Positions 54,474-64,000 of a stretch of DNA of 64,000 nt are shown one piece after another. Origin of the DNA: Saccostrea cucullata (lineage: Eukaryota); the NCBI RefSeq assembly GCF_032062105.1, contig NW_026930981.1, positions 186,001 through 250,000 on the forward strand, in the 5' to 3' direction. The translations under genes and the position numbers were made by a program. Below the pieces are notes generated by a model. That model made no database searches. It worked only from the letters and a program-made list of their open reading frames with translations, and was not told the DNA's origin. Position 1 is the first letter of the stretch. Each line of letters opens with the position of its first letter.

Positions 54474-54587
54474 CTAATTTTTACTCTGTAGCACCTTCCT
54501 TAGAATCGCGTTCACTACGTCTAAAGTCTCATCCTCCAATATCACGATATCATATCTCCTCATGTACAACTCCAGACTCTCTTCAAC
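54474..54587 (-). CDS. NT5C3: NT5C3 last coding exon (VEESLELYMRRYDIVILEDETLDVVNAILRKVLQSKN*)
   Basis: YDIV..DET C-terminal motif; acceptor TTGCCAG|; TAG at 54476-54474. Confidence 0.92.
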   Translation of the reverse strand, partial: VEESLELYMRRYDIVILEDETLDVVNAILRKVLQSKN

Positions 54588-55142: not shown

Positions 55143-55343
55143 CTTTACATTAAGAAATCCTACAGTGAGTTTATTTTTTACCCCTACAGCTCCATCAGCC
55201 ATGTGAAGATCTCCAATGGAATCCCCGATTAGGACGATGTTATTACGATGTTCTAAATTCTGGAAATAATCGGAGTCGTGTATCGCCCCCTCGTTCTTAT
55301 TAAACACATGAATTAGATCATCCTGGAAACCTGTCATTTGACC
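55143..55343 (-). CDS. NT5C3: NT5C3 exon (GQMTGFQDDLIHVFNKN...LIGDSIGDLHMADG...GFLNVK)
   Basis: HAD motifs III and IV (IHVFNK, GDSxGD); 201 nt, phase 0/0, canonical sites. Confidence 0.95.
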
Positions 55344-55353
55344 CTGAAAAAAA

Positions 55354-58178
55354 ACCAGAAGTCTCTGTCGAGACTGTAGCTCTACTGGTTTATACTTAAA
55401 ACAAAGGAAGAGAAAAGTACCAGTTGGGACTTGAGACTTTAAATCAGCAATAAATAGAAAAATGATCCTTGCCACTCATCAAAATAAAAACCAATGCACA
55501 GAATTATGTATCTTAGTATAGTCTACTTGTGTGCCAAGTTATACTGAAATCAGACCAAAACTGTAGGAGGAGTAGCATTTTGAAAGAATTTCACAGAAAT
55601 TTCTATTTTTAGTAACCACGGCAACACCGTTCATCGAAATCAAAAACCGATGCACAGAATTATGTATTTTAGTGTAGTCTACTTGTGTGCCAAGTAATAT
55701 TGAAATTGGACCAAAAATGTAGTAGGAGTAGCATTTTGAAAAAATTTCAAAGAAATTTATATTTTTAGTAACCACGGCAACACCGTTCATCGAAATCAAA
55801 AACCGATGCACAAAATTATGTATCTTAGTGTAGTCTACTTGTGTGCCAAGTTATACTGAAATCGGACCAAATCTGTAGGAGGAGTAGCATTTTGAAAGAA
55901 TTTCAAAGAAATTTCTATTTTTAGTAACCAAGGCAACACCGTTCATCAAAATCAAAAACCGATGCACAGAATTATGTATCTTAGTGTAATCTACATGTGT
56001 GCCAAGTTATAAGGAAATTGGACCAAAACTGTAGGAGGAGTAGCATTTTGAAAGAATTTCAAAGAAATTTCTATTTTTAGTAACCACGGCAACACCGTTC
56101 ATCGAAATCAAAAACCGATGTACAGAATTATGTATTTTAGTGTAGTCTACTTGTGTGCCAAGTAATATTGAAATTGGAAAAAAACTGTAGGAGGAGTAGC
56201 ATTTTGAAAGAATTTCAAAGAAATTTCTATTTTTAGTAACCACGGCAACACCGTTCATCGAAATCAAAAACCGATGCACAAAATTATGTATCTTAGTGTA
56301 GTCTACTTGTGTGCCAAGTTATATTGAAATCAGACCAAAACTGTAGGAGGAGTAGCATTTTGAAAAATTGTTTACAGACAGACAGATGGACAGACAGACA
56401 GACAGACAGACGGACAGACAGACGGACGGACGACGGACGCATTACTATCGCATAAGCTCTTCTGGTCTCTGACCAGTAGAGCTAACCAGAAGTCTCTGTC
56501 GAGACTGTAGCTCTACTGGTTTGTACTGATCAAAAACCGATGCACAGAATTATGTATCTTAGTGTAGTCTACTTGTGTGATAAGTTATATTGAAATCAGA
56601 CCAAAACTGTAGAAGGAGTAGCATTTTAAAGGAATTCCACAGAAAATTCTACTTTTAGTAACCATGGCAACACCACTCATCGAAATCAAAAACCGATGCA
56701 CTATTCTATGTATCTTAGTGTAGTCTACTTGTGTGCCAAGTGATATTGAAATGAGACTAAAACTGTAGAAGGAGTAGCGTTTTAAAAAATTTCTCAGAAA
56801 ATTCAATTTTTAGTAACCATGGCAACATCGTTCATCGAAATCAAAAACCGATGCATTATTTTATGTATCTTAGTGTAGTCTACTTGTGTGCCAAGTTATA
56901 TTGAAATCAGACCAAAACTTTAGAAGGCGTAGCGTTTTAAAGGAATTCCTCAGAAAATTCTATTTTTAGTAACCATTGCAACACCGCTCATCGAAATCAA
57001 AAACTGATGCACTATTCTATGTATCTTAGTGTAGTCTACTTGTATGCCAAGTGATATTGAAATGAGACTAAAACTGTAGAAGGAGTAGCGTTTTAAAGGA
57101 ATTTCACAGAAAATTCTATTTGTAGTAACCATGGCAACATCGTTCATCGAAATCATAAACCGATGCACTATTTTATGTATCTTAGTGTAGTCTACTTGTG
57201 TGCCAAGTTATATTGAAATCAGAACACAACTGCAGAAGGAGTAGTGTTTTAAAGGAATTTCTCAGAAAATTCTATTTTTAGTAACCAAGGCATCACCGTT
57301 CATCGAAATCAAAAACCGATGCACTATTTTATGTATCTTAGTGTAGTCAACTTGTGTGCCAAGTTATATTGAAATCAGACCAAAACTGTAGAAGGAGTAG
57401 AGTTTTAAAGGAATTACTCAGAAAATTCTATATTTAGTAACCATGGCAACACCGTTCATCGAAATCAAAAACCGATGCACTATTTTATGTATCTTAGTGT
57501 AGTCAACTTGTGTGCCAAATTATATTGAAATCAGACTAAAATTGTAGGAGGAGTAGCGTTTTGAAAAATTGTTTACAGACAGACAGACAGACAGACGGAC
57601 GGACGCCGGACGCATTACTATCACATAAGCTCTTCTGGTCTCTGACCAGTAGAGCTAATTACAAACCAGAAGTCTCTGTCGAGACTGTAGCTCTACTGGT
57701 TTGTACTTATAACAAAGGATAAGAAAAGAAGCCATTGCAATCAGACCAAAACTGTAGAAGGAGTGATGTTTTAAAGGAATTTCATGGACATTTCTACTTT
57801 TAGTACTAATGGCAACATCATTCATCAAAATCAAAAACTGATGCACTATTTAATGTATCTTAGTGTAGTCTACTTGTGTGCCAAGTTAAATTGAAATCAG
57901 ACCAAAACTGTAGAAGGAGTAGTGTTTTAAAGGAATTTCACAGAAAATTCTATTTTTAGTAACCACGGCAACACCATTCATCGAAATCAAAAACCGATGC
58001 ACAGAATTATGTGTCTTAGTGTAGTCTACTTGTGTGCCAAGTTACATTGAAATCGGACCAAAACTGTAGGAGGAGTAGCATTTTGAAAAATTGTTTACAG
58101 ACAGACAGACAGACAGACGGACGGACGACAGACACCTTACTATTGCATAAGCTCTTCTGGTCTCTGACCAGTAGAGCT
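55354..58178 (+). mobile_element. Three tandem HINEs with internal 156-bp satellite (55354-56483, 56485-57656, 57665-58178)
   Basis: Each starts ACCAGAAGTCTCTGTCGAGACTGTAGCTCTACTGG and ends (GACA)n(GACG)n...CTCTTCTGGTCTCTGACCAGTAGAGCT. Confidence 0.9.
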
Positions 58179-58273
58179 GAAAATACAATTCAGAGGTCAT
58201 GATCTATTTTTACATCTGTATAAAATGGAAAAAAATGATTTGAATAAAATTATATTTGAGCAAAAAATGACTA

Positions 58274-58479
58274 CTGTAAATCACTTTATTCGCGTGAATT
58301 TTATTTTCGCGTAATTACGCGGGTCTGCCTGCTCACGAAAAATTAATTCTTGCGTATACTTGTATTATAAATGTTTATATACAAGAGAAGTCACAGCTCG
58401 CAAAAATTTTGTTTCGTTAATAAATACCAAATAGCTAACTCGCGAAAATAAGGTGTCGCGAAAATACAGTGATCTACAG
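58274..58479. mobile_element. MITE with TA TSD (same family as 22751)
   Basis: TA|CTGTAAATCACT ... AGTGATCTACAG|TA. Confidence 0.8.
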
Positions 58480-58643
58480 TATACAGAGAACTGAAATTTC
58501 CTTTTAAAAAATTTTATAACAAAAGCTTGTTTTATTACCATTAATTATATTTTATTGACGGAATGATTTTACATACTACATGTACAAATCAAGTATAAAA
58601 CAGAAAGATTCATTAAAGCAATAAAATGTTATTTGCTACTGAC

Positions 58644-58806
58644 CTGAGCATCGTATTCCAGATAATTAGAGACGACCTTCATGTTGTCATGGAGAGTTGC
58701 CTGGTGTTTGATGACCTCAATGATGACATCACCAATCCCCGCAGAAAAGATCAGGAGAGGGATCTCATTAGCATGTAACTGGTCAAAAAACCATGTACAA
58801 CCATCC
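58644..58806 (-). CDS. NT5C3: NT5C3 exon (DGCTWFFDQLHANEIPLLIFSAGIGDVI...KVVSNYLEYDAQ)
   Basis: HAD motif II FSAGIGD and VVSN; 163 nt, phase 2/0. Confidence 0.95.
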
Positions 58807-58820
58807 CTATTAGGAAAATA

Positions 58821-60083
58821 ACCAGAAGTCTCTGTCGAGACTGTAACTCTACTGGTATGTACTTATCAAAAACCATTGCACTATTTTATGTATCTTTGTG
58901 TAGTCTACTTGTGTGCCAACTTATTTTGAAATCAAACTAGAACTGTAGAAGGAGTAGCGTTTTTAAGGAATTTCACAGAAAATTCTATTTTTAGTAACCA
59001 TGGTAACACCGTTCATCGAAATCAGAAACCGATGCACTATTCTATGTATCTTAGGGTAGTCTACTTGTGTGCCAAGTTATACTGAAATCAGACCAAAACT
59101 GTAGAAGGAGTAGCGTTTTTAAAGAATTTCACAGAAAATTCTATTTTTAGTAACCATGGCAACATCGTTCATCGAAATTAATAACCGATGCACTATTCTA
59201 TGTATCTTAGTGTAGTCTACTTGTGTGCCAAGTTATATTGAAATCAGACCAAAACTGTAGAAGAAGTAGCGTTTTTAAGGAATTTCACAGAAAATTCTAT
59301 TTTTAGTAACCATGGCAACATCGTTCATCGAAATTAAAAACCGATGCACTATTCTATGTATCTTAGTGTAGTCTACTTGTGTGCCAAGTTATATTGAAAT
59401 CAAACTAGAACTGTAGAAGGAGTAGCGTTTTTAAGGAATTTCACAGAAAATTCTATTTATAGTAACCATGGCAACACCGTTCATCTAAATTAAAAACCGA
59501 TGCACTATTCTATGTATCTTAGTGTAGCCTACTTGTGTGCCAAGTTATATTGAAATCAGACCAAAACTGCAGAAGGAGTAGCGTTTTAAAGGAATTTCAC
59601 AGAAAATTCTATTTTTAGTAACCATGGCAACACCGTTCATCGAAATCAAAAACCGATGCACTATTCTATGTATCTTAGTGTAGTCTACTTGTGTGCCAAG
59701 TTATATTGAAATCAGACCAAAACTGTGGAAGGAGTAGCATTTTAAAGGAATTTCACAGAAAATTCTATTTTTAGTAACCATGGCAACACCGTTCATCGAA
59801 ATCAAAAACCGATGCACTATTCTATGTATCTTAGTATAGTCTACTTGTGTGCCAAAGTATATTGAAATCACACCAAAACTGTGGAAGGAGTAGCGTTTTA
59901 AAGGAATTTCACAGAAAATTCTATTTTTAGTAACCATGGCAACACCGTTCATTGAAATTAAAAACCCATGCACTATTCTATGTATCTTAGTGTAGTCTAC
60001 TTGTGTGCCAAGTTATATTGAAATCAGACTAAAATTGTAGGAGGAGTAGCGTTTTGAAAAATTGTTTACAGACAGACGGACAG

Positions 60084-60118
<35 letters not shown>

Positions 60119-60177
60119 GACGGACGCCGGACGCATTACTATCGCATAAGCTCTTCTGGTCTCTGACCAGTAGAGCT
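58821..60177 (+). mobile_element. HINE with ~8 copies of the 156-bp satellite
   Basis: Same termini as the elements at 55354. Confidence 0.9.
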
Positions 60178-60322: not shown

Positions 60323-60951
60323 ATGTAACCTCTGTCTGGAAGTTGAATTTTCTATCATTTATCTACTGTAAATATTACCTTAGCCTGACAGTTGAGTTTT
60401 CTATTATTTGACTCCTGATTATGTTACCTTAGCCTGAAAGTTGAATTTTCTACCACTTGTCTACTGTATATGTTACCTTAGCCTGAAAGTTGAATTTTCT
60501 ACCATTTCTCTACTGTAAATATTACCTTAGTCTGGCTGTTGAATTTTCTACCACTTGTCTTCTCTATATGTTACCATAGCCTGGCTGTTGAATTTTCTAC
60601 CATTTATCTACTGTAAATATTACCTTAGCCTGGCTGTTGAATTTTCTATTATTTGTCTACTGTATATGTTATCTTTGCCTGAAAGTTGAATTTTCTACCA
60701 TCTGTCAACTGTAAATATTATCTTGGTCTGCTTTGTTGAATTTTCTACCATTTGTCTAATGTTTATGGGTTTTTAAGCCAGACAGATGAATTTTCTACCA
60801 CTTGTCTACTGATATGTTACCTTAGTTTGGCAGTTGAATTTTCCATTTGTCTAATGTTTATGGGTTTTTTTAGCCTGACAGTTGAATTTTCTACCACTTG
60901 TCTACTGATATGTTACCTTAGTTTGGCAGTTGAATTTTCCACCATTTGTCT
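60323..60951. repeat. 49-bp minisatellite derived from the exon 3' end plus splice donor
   Basis: GTTGAATTTTCTACC recurs at 60440, 60489, 60538, etc.; the last unit overlaps the exon at 60917-60951. Confidence 0.88.
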
Positions 60952-61006
60952 AACATCATCTTTATTTATGTTACACTTCGCCAACAAATCATGGGCTTTT
61001 GTCCAC
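60917..61006 (-). CDS. NT5C3: NT5C3 exon (WTKAHDLLAKCNINKDDVRQMVENSTAKLR)
   Basis: 90 nt, phase 2/2, CTACAG| and AG|GTAAC. Confidence 0.92.
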
Positions 61007-61140
61007 CTGTAGATTAACAAAGATAAAATGATTTCAGTTTTAGCAACAGCCCTATTACACAATACAGTGTATACTGTTAAGAGAGTTCTAGGAAAATCTC
61101 TCATGTCACAGATATGTACAAAGTCTCACACATTACTCAC

Positions 61141-61226
61141 CATTCCACCATAATTGGAATTTTTTCTTCCATAGTTAGTTGAGGGTTGGTCTCAATAGGA
61201 AAATAGTGATCCCTTAATGCCCTCGC
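61141..61226 (-). CDS. NT5C3: NT5C3 exon (ARALRDHYFPIETNPQLTMEEKIPIMVEW)
   Basis: YxPIE..EEK.P.MVEW cap-domain motif; 86 nt, phase 0/2. Confidence 0.93.
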
Positions 61227-61584
61227 CTATAATGAGAAATGGATTACTAAAGTGAGCAGTCAGTGATCTGGACAAACAAGGAGAGACATGGAAATGATGT
61301 TTCCACATAGAAAACAATATATACGGAATCTAGGAAAATATTAAGTTATTAACATGCTCCAATAGTTTTTACTGTACACATGAAATGAAGTTTTAGATGA
61401 GGAAATTAAATTGACAAATGATCAGTAATTGTCAGTATGATTCCACTCATCAAATTTAGTATCATTGAATTTAGATTGTAAATAATATATTTACTGCTTG
61501 ACTGTCCCAGTGACTTGTTTTACAAGACTTAAGACAGTCGCCCCATTATCTGAGGTATGTTCTATTGAGTTAATACATACTGAC

Positions 61585-61631
61585 CTCTTCTTTATAGAAA
61601 TCTGGCAAAACATGTCCCTCTTCTAGAACAT
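61585..61631 (-). CDS. NT5C3: NT5C3 exon (NVLEEGHVLPDFYKEE)
   Basis: 47 nt, phase 1/0; keeps the frame between flanking exons. Confidence 0.88.
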
Positions 61632-62195
61632 CTGAAAATACAATTACATGGCAGGTTAAATGATTTACATATCTACATCATTAAAGTAGTCTACAAATTT
61701 TTAACTTTCTATTTTTAATGAATATAAAGAAAAAAAAATTATAAGTTTGAATGACTTTTTTTTAAAGTATGGTACCTGGATACCAAATATATTTAATATG
61801 GTTACTTACAGCTTAATTTTACTGAAAATTTTATCCTTGCATTTGAAACTAGAGTGTTTATAAACCTACAATATTATCTACAATTTTTCAGCACCATTAT
61901 ACTATATTGTAATGAAATTAAAACAATATACACATTCTCGTATCAAGAATTTTAGTATTCTGTGATGTGCTGACTGAAATGACCTGGGAGTTAGTTCAAA
62001 ATCATACAACAAATGTTGACAAAACACCATGCACTATTTAAGAAATATGACTTTAACTCTGCAAACTTTGCCATAGATATAGTTTAAAATGTCACCCACT
62101 TTATAAGAAACAATGGAATGGTAAATATACATATACATATATACAGCTAATGTTAAAATTGGATTAATAGACCAAAAGGAACATGGGATTAGATA

Positions 62196-62401
62196 CTGTA
62201 CACAGGAAAAATTTTCCCCCGTTTTATTTTCACCCCTTTGGCCCTACCCTCATTTGGCCAAATTTAAAATGGTGCGAATTCAAAGAATAATGTATATTTT
62301 CTTAAAAATAACTATGACTGCGTGAATATAAAATGGGGCAAAATTGTTTTTAAGTGTAAAAGGGTGAAAATAACATGGGACGAAAATAACCCTGTATACA
62401 G
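62196..62401. mobile_element. MITE with TA TSD
   Basis: TA|CTGTACACAGG ... CCTGTATACAG|TA. Confidence 0.75.
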
Positions 62402-62617
62402 TAGTATGGATTGCCAGTTTGAATTAAATGAATTCATTGAAAAATAGAGGAAATTCAAGGGATCTCTATCAAATCTCAAAATTTTATCTGATAAAAAAGA
62501 AGCACACTATCCTCACAGTCAGACCTAATTTATACACCTTCCCCCCAAGTCAGTAGGGGACTACAATGGGGGGAGAATGTTTGTATAAATCACATCACCC
62601 TGTGAGGTTTCACATAC

Positions 62618-62687
62618 TATGACAAGTCGAGCAGATTTGGCCTCGGTATGTGTATTTGGACAGAGTTCTATCAAAGTCGGCTACCAC
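62618..62687 (-). CDS. NT5C3: NT5C3 catalytic motif I exon, variant b (VVADFDRTLSKYTYRGQICSTCH)
   Basis: DFDxTL; 70 nt, phase 0/1; CTTTCAG| and A|GTATGT. Confidence 0.93.
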
Positions 62688-63232
62688 CTGAAAGTAAGGA
62701 AAAGACATGAAACTGGACATTAACAACACAAAAACTAAACTAGTGAGGTGCCTTTAGGACAGTACTGTAGGTCTATGATGCTTGGTGTAGATATGCTTCA
62801 AAGTCAACAAGTTTAGTTTAATAAATTTGTATCACACGTAAAACTTTTTTTTGTCAACACATCCTTTCATGATCATGATGATGTGAAGAATTCTGGGTAT
62901 GATATGTCATTCAATCTTGAATGAAAAGTTACAGAACTGAATTCTACATGTACCTGCATCAAAAAAATACAGTACTGTCACGTGTTAATGAACTGTATGG
63001 TTAGTGATTTACCCTAGCGCCCGTGTCTGTAGTTTGTGTGCTTCATACACTCAGAGATACAAATAAACTGTGCAGAGTCTGTATTCCTATGAGATCATTT
63101 GTACTACTTTGCATTTAACAGTAAATATTTCATATTCAATTTTACCGTTTTATTAATCTGGCTGAGGTATGAAACAACAAACTCTTCCACATATACATCT
63201 GGGCTGTGCAAGGGGAGATCATCTCTACTTAC

Positions 63233-63302
63233 TATGAGTGCCAGCACACTGTGTGCCATTTTCTTTGAATTTCGTCAAAGTGAAATCAAAATCAGCTGTC
63301 AC
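63233..63302 (-). CDS. NT5C3: NT5C3 catalytic motif I exon, variant a (VTADFDFTLTKFKENGTQCAGTH); duplicated, probably mutually exclusive with variant b
   Basis: DFDxTL; 70 nt, phase 0/1; TTGTATCAG| and A|GTAAGT; no stop codons. Confidence 0.85.
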
Positions 63303-63470
63303 CTGATACAATAAAGCAATTTCTTATAGTCTTATACAGAGTCATAAAAATGGTCCTTCCATTCTCCCTTCTTTTCCACTGTAACATTTTAACAGTTACA
63401 ATATGGTTTAACAATGTCAAACAAGACTAAAAAAATTGATCAGTAAAACCCTATGAAGGATAAAACATAC

Positions 63471-63569
63471 CTGTAACTTGTCATGGCCATCTTTGATCAT
63501 ATTCTGAATCACTTCTGTGACATGATCAGGACGAGCTATCTTCACATGGGGTAACTTGAGCTCTGGTAT
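63471..63569 (-). CDS. NT5C3: NT5C3 exon (IPELKLPHVKIARPDHVTEVIQNMIKDGHDKLQ); start exon lies outside the window
   Basis: 99 nt, phase 0/0; G..KLQ immediately precedes motif I, as in cN-III proteins. Confidence 0.9.
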
Positions 63570-64000
63570 CTGAAATCAAAATGATGCTCATGATTACTTC
63601 TAATAAGCTTGATAGGTGCCAAACACTACATGTGCATGTATCTTTAACAGAAAGTCAAATCAAGTTTTGTTTGGCTAATGTTAAGCAATATATATGGCAA
63701 ATATTCACCACTGTATGCAAGATAGTATAAGTACAAACAGCTAAAACTCAGTCTCACAAGGAAATAATCTGAACTGATATTTATTGTTGAGTAATTCATG
63801 GCTAATTGTTCAATAATTTCCCTAGAAATTAAGCAGCTTTAAGATGATATACAACTCTATTCCACGTCAGGTGTTAAAAATATAATTGATTTACATTTGT
63901 TTTTCTATAAACATGAGAAAATAGTCTGTCCCTTTTTTAACCTGAAAGCAGGTGTCTGCTTACACAAACTTAGGAATGAATGACTACAAATATATGTACT

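Follow-up and report, generated by a model that had tools for sequence, protein, structure and literature searches.

Tandem Alternative Exons Encode Two Forms of the Motif I Segment of NT5C3 in the Oyster Saccostrea cucullata

Results

The window, the whole 64,000-nt stretch of Saccostrea cucullata DNA that was analyzed, contains zero N and carries an NT5C3 gene on its minus strand. A constitutive exon of 99 nt (63471..63569), which ends in ...KLQ at phase 0, precedes a pair of alternative 70-nt exons, designated a (63233..63302) and b (62618..62687). The gene continues through the constitutive exon e3 (61585..61631, 47 nt), which completes the Asn69 codon, exon e4 (61141..61226, 86 nt), which ends in the Trp113 codon, and exon e5 (60917..61006, 90 nt), which is single here and places Trp at mouse Tyr114 and Ala at Ser117. 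Exon e6 (58644..58806, 163 nt) encodes HAD motif II, exon e7 (55143..55343, 201 nt) encodes the catalytic Lys and the GDSxGD motif, and the last coding exon (54474..54587) contains the stop codon. In RefSeq, long and short N termini arise from alternative first exons outside the window (P0208/P0209 versus P0207/P0210), as in vertebrate NT5C3A.

Exons a and b are each entered in phase 0 and left in phase 1, have AG acceptors and GT donors (GTAAGT for a and GTATGT for b), and are separated by a 545-nt intron; their coordinates, peptides, and GT-AG borders, as given in a preliminary description made from the sequence alone, were borne out. The two exons are identical at 40 of 70 nt and at 11 of 23 residues. 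Exon b is of the ancestral type (DFDRT...TCH), while the derived copy, a, has Phe after DFD and Gly at the position of mouse Thr66 and keeps His68. When exons were joined in silico, either a or b alone with the flanking exons gave an open frame of 289 codons. Inclusion of both produced a stop 640 nt upstream of the last junction and inclusion of neither a stop 578 nt upstream, in agreement with the earlier statement that both or neither would shift the frame. Arranged in tandem, homologous, and equal in length and phase, a and b have the layout of homologous mutually exclusive exons.

Both exons are also present on a second haplotig, C6616, in which a is identical and b differs at five bases, which fall in four codons and change one residue. 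The introns of the two haplotypes differ by 5 to 9%, in addition to indels. We considered whether C6616 could be a paralogue and ruled this out: its exons are 93 to 100% identical and its introns are shared, which identifies it as the other haplotype. Repeats occupy several of the introns. At 60341-60952, a 49-nt minisatellite of 12.5 copies is built from the 3' end of e5 and the e5 donor, and is found in the other haplotype too; the true e5 donor at 60917 is used by RNA contigs. A MITE-like element with 46-nt inverted ends lies in the intron between b and e3 (62194-62403), where many unrelated RNA contigs map. A 156-nt tandem unit forms four arrays in NT5C3 introns at 55476-60125, three of them flanked by (ACAG)n; since these arrays are missing from the matching introns of C6616, they are taken to be recent insertions.

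The use of the two exons was followed in RNA contigs assembled from four runs of three studies and aligned to positions 60860-63700, the depths of which are not expression levels. Intron differences indicate that the RNA comes from a close lineage and not from the sequenced individual. All four junctions by which the preliminary description proposed to check its claim, 63471>63302, 63233>61631, 63471>62687, and 62618>61631, were found. A single contig of run X3 joins the upstream exon to a and continues through e3, e4, and e5; run X2 joins the upstream exon to b and b to e3, and runs X1 and X4 join b to e3. With both a and b joined to their flanks in RNA, one gene does splice in swapped active-site segments, as had been claimed. 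No a>b joint was present among those listed for the four runs, although contigs cannot prove absence. Contigs of every one of the four runs extended over the intron between a and b, the distant part of the intron between b and e3 was uncovered, and in one contig of run X4, b was already joined to e3 while the intron upstream of b was still present. Taken together, these observations suggest that the intron downstream of b is often spliced out first.

Exon b is apparently the major form. Junctions of a occurred in one run only, and the full-length Logan proteins inspected from Magallana/Crassostrea clusters were all of the b type, so that a may be minor or tissue restricted. Automatic annotation in RefSeq had already placed both isoforms on this contig, with RefSeq X1 and X3 corresponding to b and X2 and X4 to a. 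The preliminary description knew of no report of the pair; we likewise found no paper, but the isoforms themselves had been annotated.

In other oysters, the exclusivity of a and b is leaky. Databases contain proteins with both segments from Ostrea, from Magallana/Crassostrea (one from three RNA contigs), and from Dreissena, so the predicted absence of 63233>62687 held for the S. cucullata joints listed but not for products of related oysters. These proteins start with exon a in a shifted frame and then continue into b. The oyster frame of this kind uses an ATG inside exon a, which lies at 63259 in S. cucullata, where, being in frame with b once a and b are joined, it would open 265 codons for a product without the N terminus; this ATG is present in three oyster genera and absent in Pinctada. 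The a+b mRNAs hold an early stop in the main frame and are likely substrates for decay.

We next turn to the conservation of the pair. In the genomes of Ostrea edulis, Magallana gigas, Pinctada imbricata, and Potamilus, a freshwater mussel, the pair was found in a-then-b order; a search of relatives proposed at the outset thus returned the tandem pair in four other bivalve genomes. Together with the presence of both exons on the second haplotig, this speaks against a chance resemblance. Isoform pairs differing in the motif I segment alone were found, as proteins only, in Saccostrea echinata, Crassostrea virginica, Mytilus, Mya, and Dreissena. An exon a never spliced in and missing or disrupted in related species, which the preliminary description named as fatal to its reading, is not what we observed, given its splicing in run X3 and its retention in tandem elsewhere. 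At the scallop (Mizuhopecten) and limpet (Lottia) loci, exon a was not found, and each has one b-type exon.

Between oyster genera, uncorrected proportions of nonsynonymous differences (pN) were 0 to 0.047 for a and 0.02 to 0.058 for b, against pS of 0.26 to 0.41 (0.26 to 0.37 for a); between a and b, pN, again an uncorrected proportion, was 0.42. These values indicate that both a and b are under purifying selection, and the suggested old duplication with both copies selected stands (pN of 0 to 0.06 versus pS of 0.26 to 0.41 among oyster genera). In an exon tree, b clusters with the single gastropod exon, which marks a as the derived copy. The a forms of oysters, pearl oysters, and mussels group together (94/92), as do those of clams and Potamilus (100/91). 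With its 23 columns, the tree is too short to tell a common origin of clam a and oyster a from separate ones; their shared position and donor type favor a single origin. The tandem duplication would go back at least to the ancestor that oysters, pearl oysters, and mussels share, and possibly to that of most bivalves. A frameshift has disabled b in one Ruditapes gene, which retains a (L014:10537-10606). Venerid clams hold several NT5C3 genes, and in one Mercenaria a form, Ala replaces the nucleophile Asp (P0159, P0232, and P0233 are from Mercenaria); it is possible that in these clams the two exon types have been sorted into separate genes.

Exon a could be mainly regulatory or decaying, lowering output through a+b inclusion or intron retention followed by decay, with an a protein that matters little. 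The a+b products in the Ostrea, Magallana/Crassostrea, and Dreissena databases, the coverage of the a-b intron in every run, and the lack of exon a at the scallop locus are what such an exon might leave behind. Selection acts on a at the protein level, however (pN of 0 to 0.05 and pS of 0.26 to 0.37 among oysters), and a frame-correct RNA contig joins it to the upstream exon and e3. We therefore regard this explanation as very improbable.

How one exon is chosen over the other was examined at the splice sites. Steric exclusion is unsupported, with a-b introns of 486 to 7976 nt across species, and so is exclusion through U12 sites, all sites being GT-AG with U2-type donors. As for a docking/selector arrangement, no pairing of the motif that follows a was shared across species. 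Exon a has a generally weaker pyrimidine tract, with a pyrimidine-poor acceptor, and a GTAAGT donor. Exon b has the stronger tract (equal to that of a in Pinctada), and its donor is GTAYGT in oysters, Pinctada, and Potamilus; in two single-exon species, the donor is GTAAGT. Downstream of the a donor lies a conserved intron stretch (63170..63232, minus strand) with motifs at 63219-63206 and 63175-63170 that may form a weak fold back onto the donor; it exceeded the shuffled score against Ostrea but not against Magallana.

A hairpin (62511..62607, minus strand) starts 11 nt after the b donor, with a folding energy of -50.5 kcal/mol (z score of -4.5). It is closed by a box C/box D motif of the kink-turn kind, and its interior is paired. 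The arms are kept in Ostrea and Magallana, around a variable interior of 87 to 157 nt. When Magallana was left out of its construction, a model of the hairpin matched Magallana (E of 1e-4, a rough value) and had no match in the five non-oyster loci; a third genomic match (L023, 38 bits) lacked the C/D motif and was discarded. In all four oyster copies, a 6-bp stem and a 3-nt bulge are followed by G.A, A.G, U.U, and G-C pairs formed from the C and D boxes, the C box ending in U instead of A. These copies thus hold the C box, D box, and terminal stem of a kink-turn as a sequence motif. One inner pair is G.U, A-U, or G-C across the three oyster genera. No conserved single-stranded guide or C'/D' boxes were found within the hairpin, the region before D being paired and variable, and Rfam gave no match at E<10. 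By its sequence, the oyster hairpin looks like a box C/D kink-turn. The element is single copy, and since only its two haplotype copies were found, origin from a transposon is unlikely. A SECIS element was ruled out: the hairpin is intronic, has no AA at the set distance in Ostrea, and has too long an apical part. The exon pair is older than the hairpin, which therefore cannot be the basic cause of exclusivity.

We then considered what the exchange means for the protein. In an alignment, the 70-nt exon corresponds to residues 46-68 of mouse cN-IIIA and comprises the first core strand, Asp49, Asp51, the squiggle and flap of HAD anatomy, and the stacking His68, so the segment is motif I plus the start of the cap, as the preliminary description had it. 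Both isoforms contain motif I DxDxT, the motif II Ser, the catalytic Lys, and GDSxGD, with identical catalytic aspartates, and database proteins of both types scored above the gathering cutoff of PF05822 (322 bits for b and 321 bits for a). A structural model of the a isoform (pLDDT of 92) superposes on mouse cN-IIIA (2BDU) at a TM score of 0.96; this predicted fold is as expected for a working enzyme, and the model is silent on specificity.

Published pocket determinants are H-N-W-Y in IIIA and F-G-W-W in fly IIIB, with Tyr60 in human IIIB and His at the stacking position in some IIIB orthologues; IIIA and IIIB overlap widely in specificity (PMC3946280, including its Table 2). At these four determinants, both S. 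cucullata isoforms read H-N-W-W. They do not match the cN-IIIA type (H-N-W-Y with Ser117), since both combine H-N-W-W with Ala. Of the cN-IIIB features (Trp121 and, at the stacking position, Phe or Tyr, sometimes His), both isoforms have the Trp and have His at the stacking site. The residues that differ between a and b adjoin the determinants, at positions 52, 66, and 67 (mouse numbering) and in the flap hairpin. In exon a, Arg52 is replaced by Phe and Thr66 by Gly. Thr66, which reportedly contacts uracil in the cN-IIIA-UMP structure 4FE3, corresponds to Thr, Ser, or Cys in 42 of the 43 outside rows. It is among the pocket residues left flexible in docking on mouse cN-IIIA (PMC3946280). The combination of Phe52, Gly66, and His68 occurs in 17 fetched proteins, matching the a forms of oysters, pearl oysters, and mussels.

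It could be argued that a and b share one substrate preference and differ in stability, in metal or salt tolerance, in phosphotransferase ratio, or in partner binding. The common H-N-W-W pocket and catalytic residues would fit such a view, as would a flap hairpin that is partly exposed and the many a/b differences at positions that vary freely across the family. The two changes fixed across pteriomorph a forms are, however, those at 52 and 66, which adjoin the catalytic Asp and the stacking His, and position 66 is otherwise nearly always Thr, Ser, or Cys. For this reason, we consider a shared preference unlikely.

A different pattern was found in other molluscs. Exon a measures 55 nt in Mya, Dreissena, Ruditapes, Mercenaria, and Potamilus; five flap residues are missing from it, and its last residue is Tyr or Phe, which is the stacking residue of the IIIB type. 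Exon b of the same five genera ends in His. Two Haliotis isoforms are distinguished by precisely the 30 residues that e5 encodes, with W-W in one and W-Y in the other (P0247/P0248, P0186/P0292, and P0187/P0246). At the Lottia locus, two 90-nt e5 exons lie in tandem, each with proper splice sites (L016:5410-5499 and 6599-6688); they are predicted to encode W-T-N-A-H and Y-E-K-S-H, which match IIIB and IIIA, respectively, at positions 114 and 117. In the snail Physella acuta, two isoforms differ at residues 48-65 alone, within the motif I exon, with Arg versus Trp after DFD (P0182 and P0293); this is probably another duplication of the motif I exon. Considered together, the clam and oyster motif I exons, the Haliotis and Lottia e5 exons, and the Physella pair indicate that segments with known determinants have been duplicated repeatedly, by sequence comparison on two occasions or more, perhaps three or four.

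These data bear on the proposal that one gene achieves by splicing what vertebrates achieved with NT5C3A and NT5C3B, a and b being functional equivalents of NT5C3B (m7GMP nucleotidase) and NT5C3A (pyrimidine nucleotidase), respectively. For oysters, the IIIA/IIIB reading is not supported, since H-N-W-W is found in both isoforms, with His68 and Trp114 in each, although Gly66 could widen the oyster pocket. Judged from the residues, an IIIA/IIIB-like swap fits better in clams, where a ends in Tyr or Phe and b in His, and in limpet and abalone, where the other exon pair gives W-W versus W-Y. Against this, clam exon a deletes five flap residues that the matched IIIB structures keep. As an account of the exon pair, functional equivalence to the vertebrate enzymes appears distinctly improbable to us.

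Discussion

The explanation that we favor, and consider likely, is that tandem duplication of the motif I exon allows one NT5C3 gene to make two folded, catalytically intact cN-III enzymes, of which a remodels the pocket wall. Exon b would retain the ancestral enzyme as the main form. Exon a would reshape the nucleoside pocket wall together with the squiggle/flap hinge: the change of Thr66 to Gly is predicted to remove a pocket hydroxyl, and it would act together with the change of Arg52 to Phe and new flap residues. The expected outcome is a shift in Km and kcat among CMP, UMP, m7GMP, and other modified nucleotides rather than a flip from IIIA to IIIB. Exon choice may be set by competing sites, a having a weak acceptor and a strong donor and b a strong acceptor and a weaker donor. 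Exon b would often be joined to e3 first, with nonsense-mediated decay clearing the errors. The kink-turn hairpin at the b donor may bias the choice in oysters.

A bolder proposal is conceivable. Molluscs could have repeatedly built a splice switch of NT5C3 substrate preference, through the motif I exon in bivalves and Physella and through e5 in limpet and abalone, as a substitute for the gene duplication of vertebrates. In oysters, this switch would be thrown in cis by the box C/D kink-turn at the b donor, which would bind an L7Ae-family protein and so link the supply of ribosomes or snoRNPs to the choice of pocket. We regard this scheme as a speculative one that is probably wrong as a whole.

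Returning to the two-enzyme explanation, we note that the isoforms were already in automatic annotations, so that what is new here is the pattern and not the existence of the exons. Mutually exclusive exons that hold a catalytic motif are rare, with nine events touching catalytic sites in a survey of five organisms, one of them in a fly nucleotidase of another fold, CG42249 (PMC7954323). The NT5C3 pair is old and expressed and comes with natural controls, namely, two-exon, one-exon, shortened-copy, and other-pocket-exon lineages. It offers natural variants for testing pyrimidine versus m7GMP preference in cN-III, a question answered only in part by published mutants, as well as a candidate RNA element for exon choice. 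The molluscan pattern, read from these sequences, suggests that splicing tunes the enzyme's substrates.

Mutually exclusive exons are familiar from exons 9 and 10 of PKM and exons 3A and 3C of KHK. In homologous pairs, the fold is kept and the residues that vary are concentrated close to functional sites (Lam et al. 2021, PMC7954323); the NT5C3 pair belongs in this class, and a word search of that study returned no NT5C3 case. Our literature search on NT5C3 exon switching, mutually exclusive exons, and molluscan NT5C3, which most subscription journals lay outside, likewise found nothing relevant. The 134-nt exons 6a and 6e of coq-2 are equal-length, homologous, and mutually exclusive, occur in molluscs, and differ in a few residues beside the active site, and the substrate switch was demonstrated by exon deletion (Tan et al. 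2020, PMC7434440). The likeness to NT5C3 extends to internal exons of a length that is not a multiple of three, with one ancestral and one derived copy. In contrast, coq-2 is another enzyme, whereas the NT5C3 exon holds the catalytic nucleophile itself and its effect is predicted from sequence. In its repeated origin, mrp-1 is closer to the duplication of different NT5C3 pocket exons in different lineages.

For the hairpin, the nearest counterpart is SNORD86, which acts in cis on a splice donor in NOP56 pre-mRNA (reviewed in PMC7038934). Both have box C/D motifs beside a donor and are able to pair internally. The oyster hairpin differs in having no conserved C'/D' boxes or guide, no Rfam match, and a host gene unrelated to snoRNPs, and is a candidate regulator. 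For the enzyme itself, vertebrate cN-IIIA, vertebrate cN-IIIB, and fly cN-IIIB share the family, fold, and catalytic motifs (E of about 1e-95; TM score of 0.96; PF05822; PMC3946280, PMC9144445). Unlike the vertebrate pair, the oyster isoforms both have the hybrid H-N-W-W pocket, and they have been diversified by exon rather than by gene.
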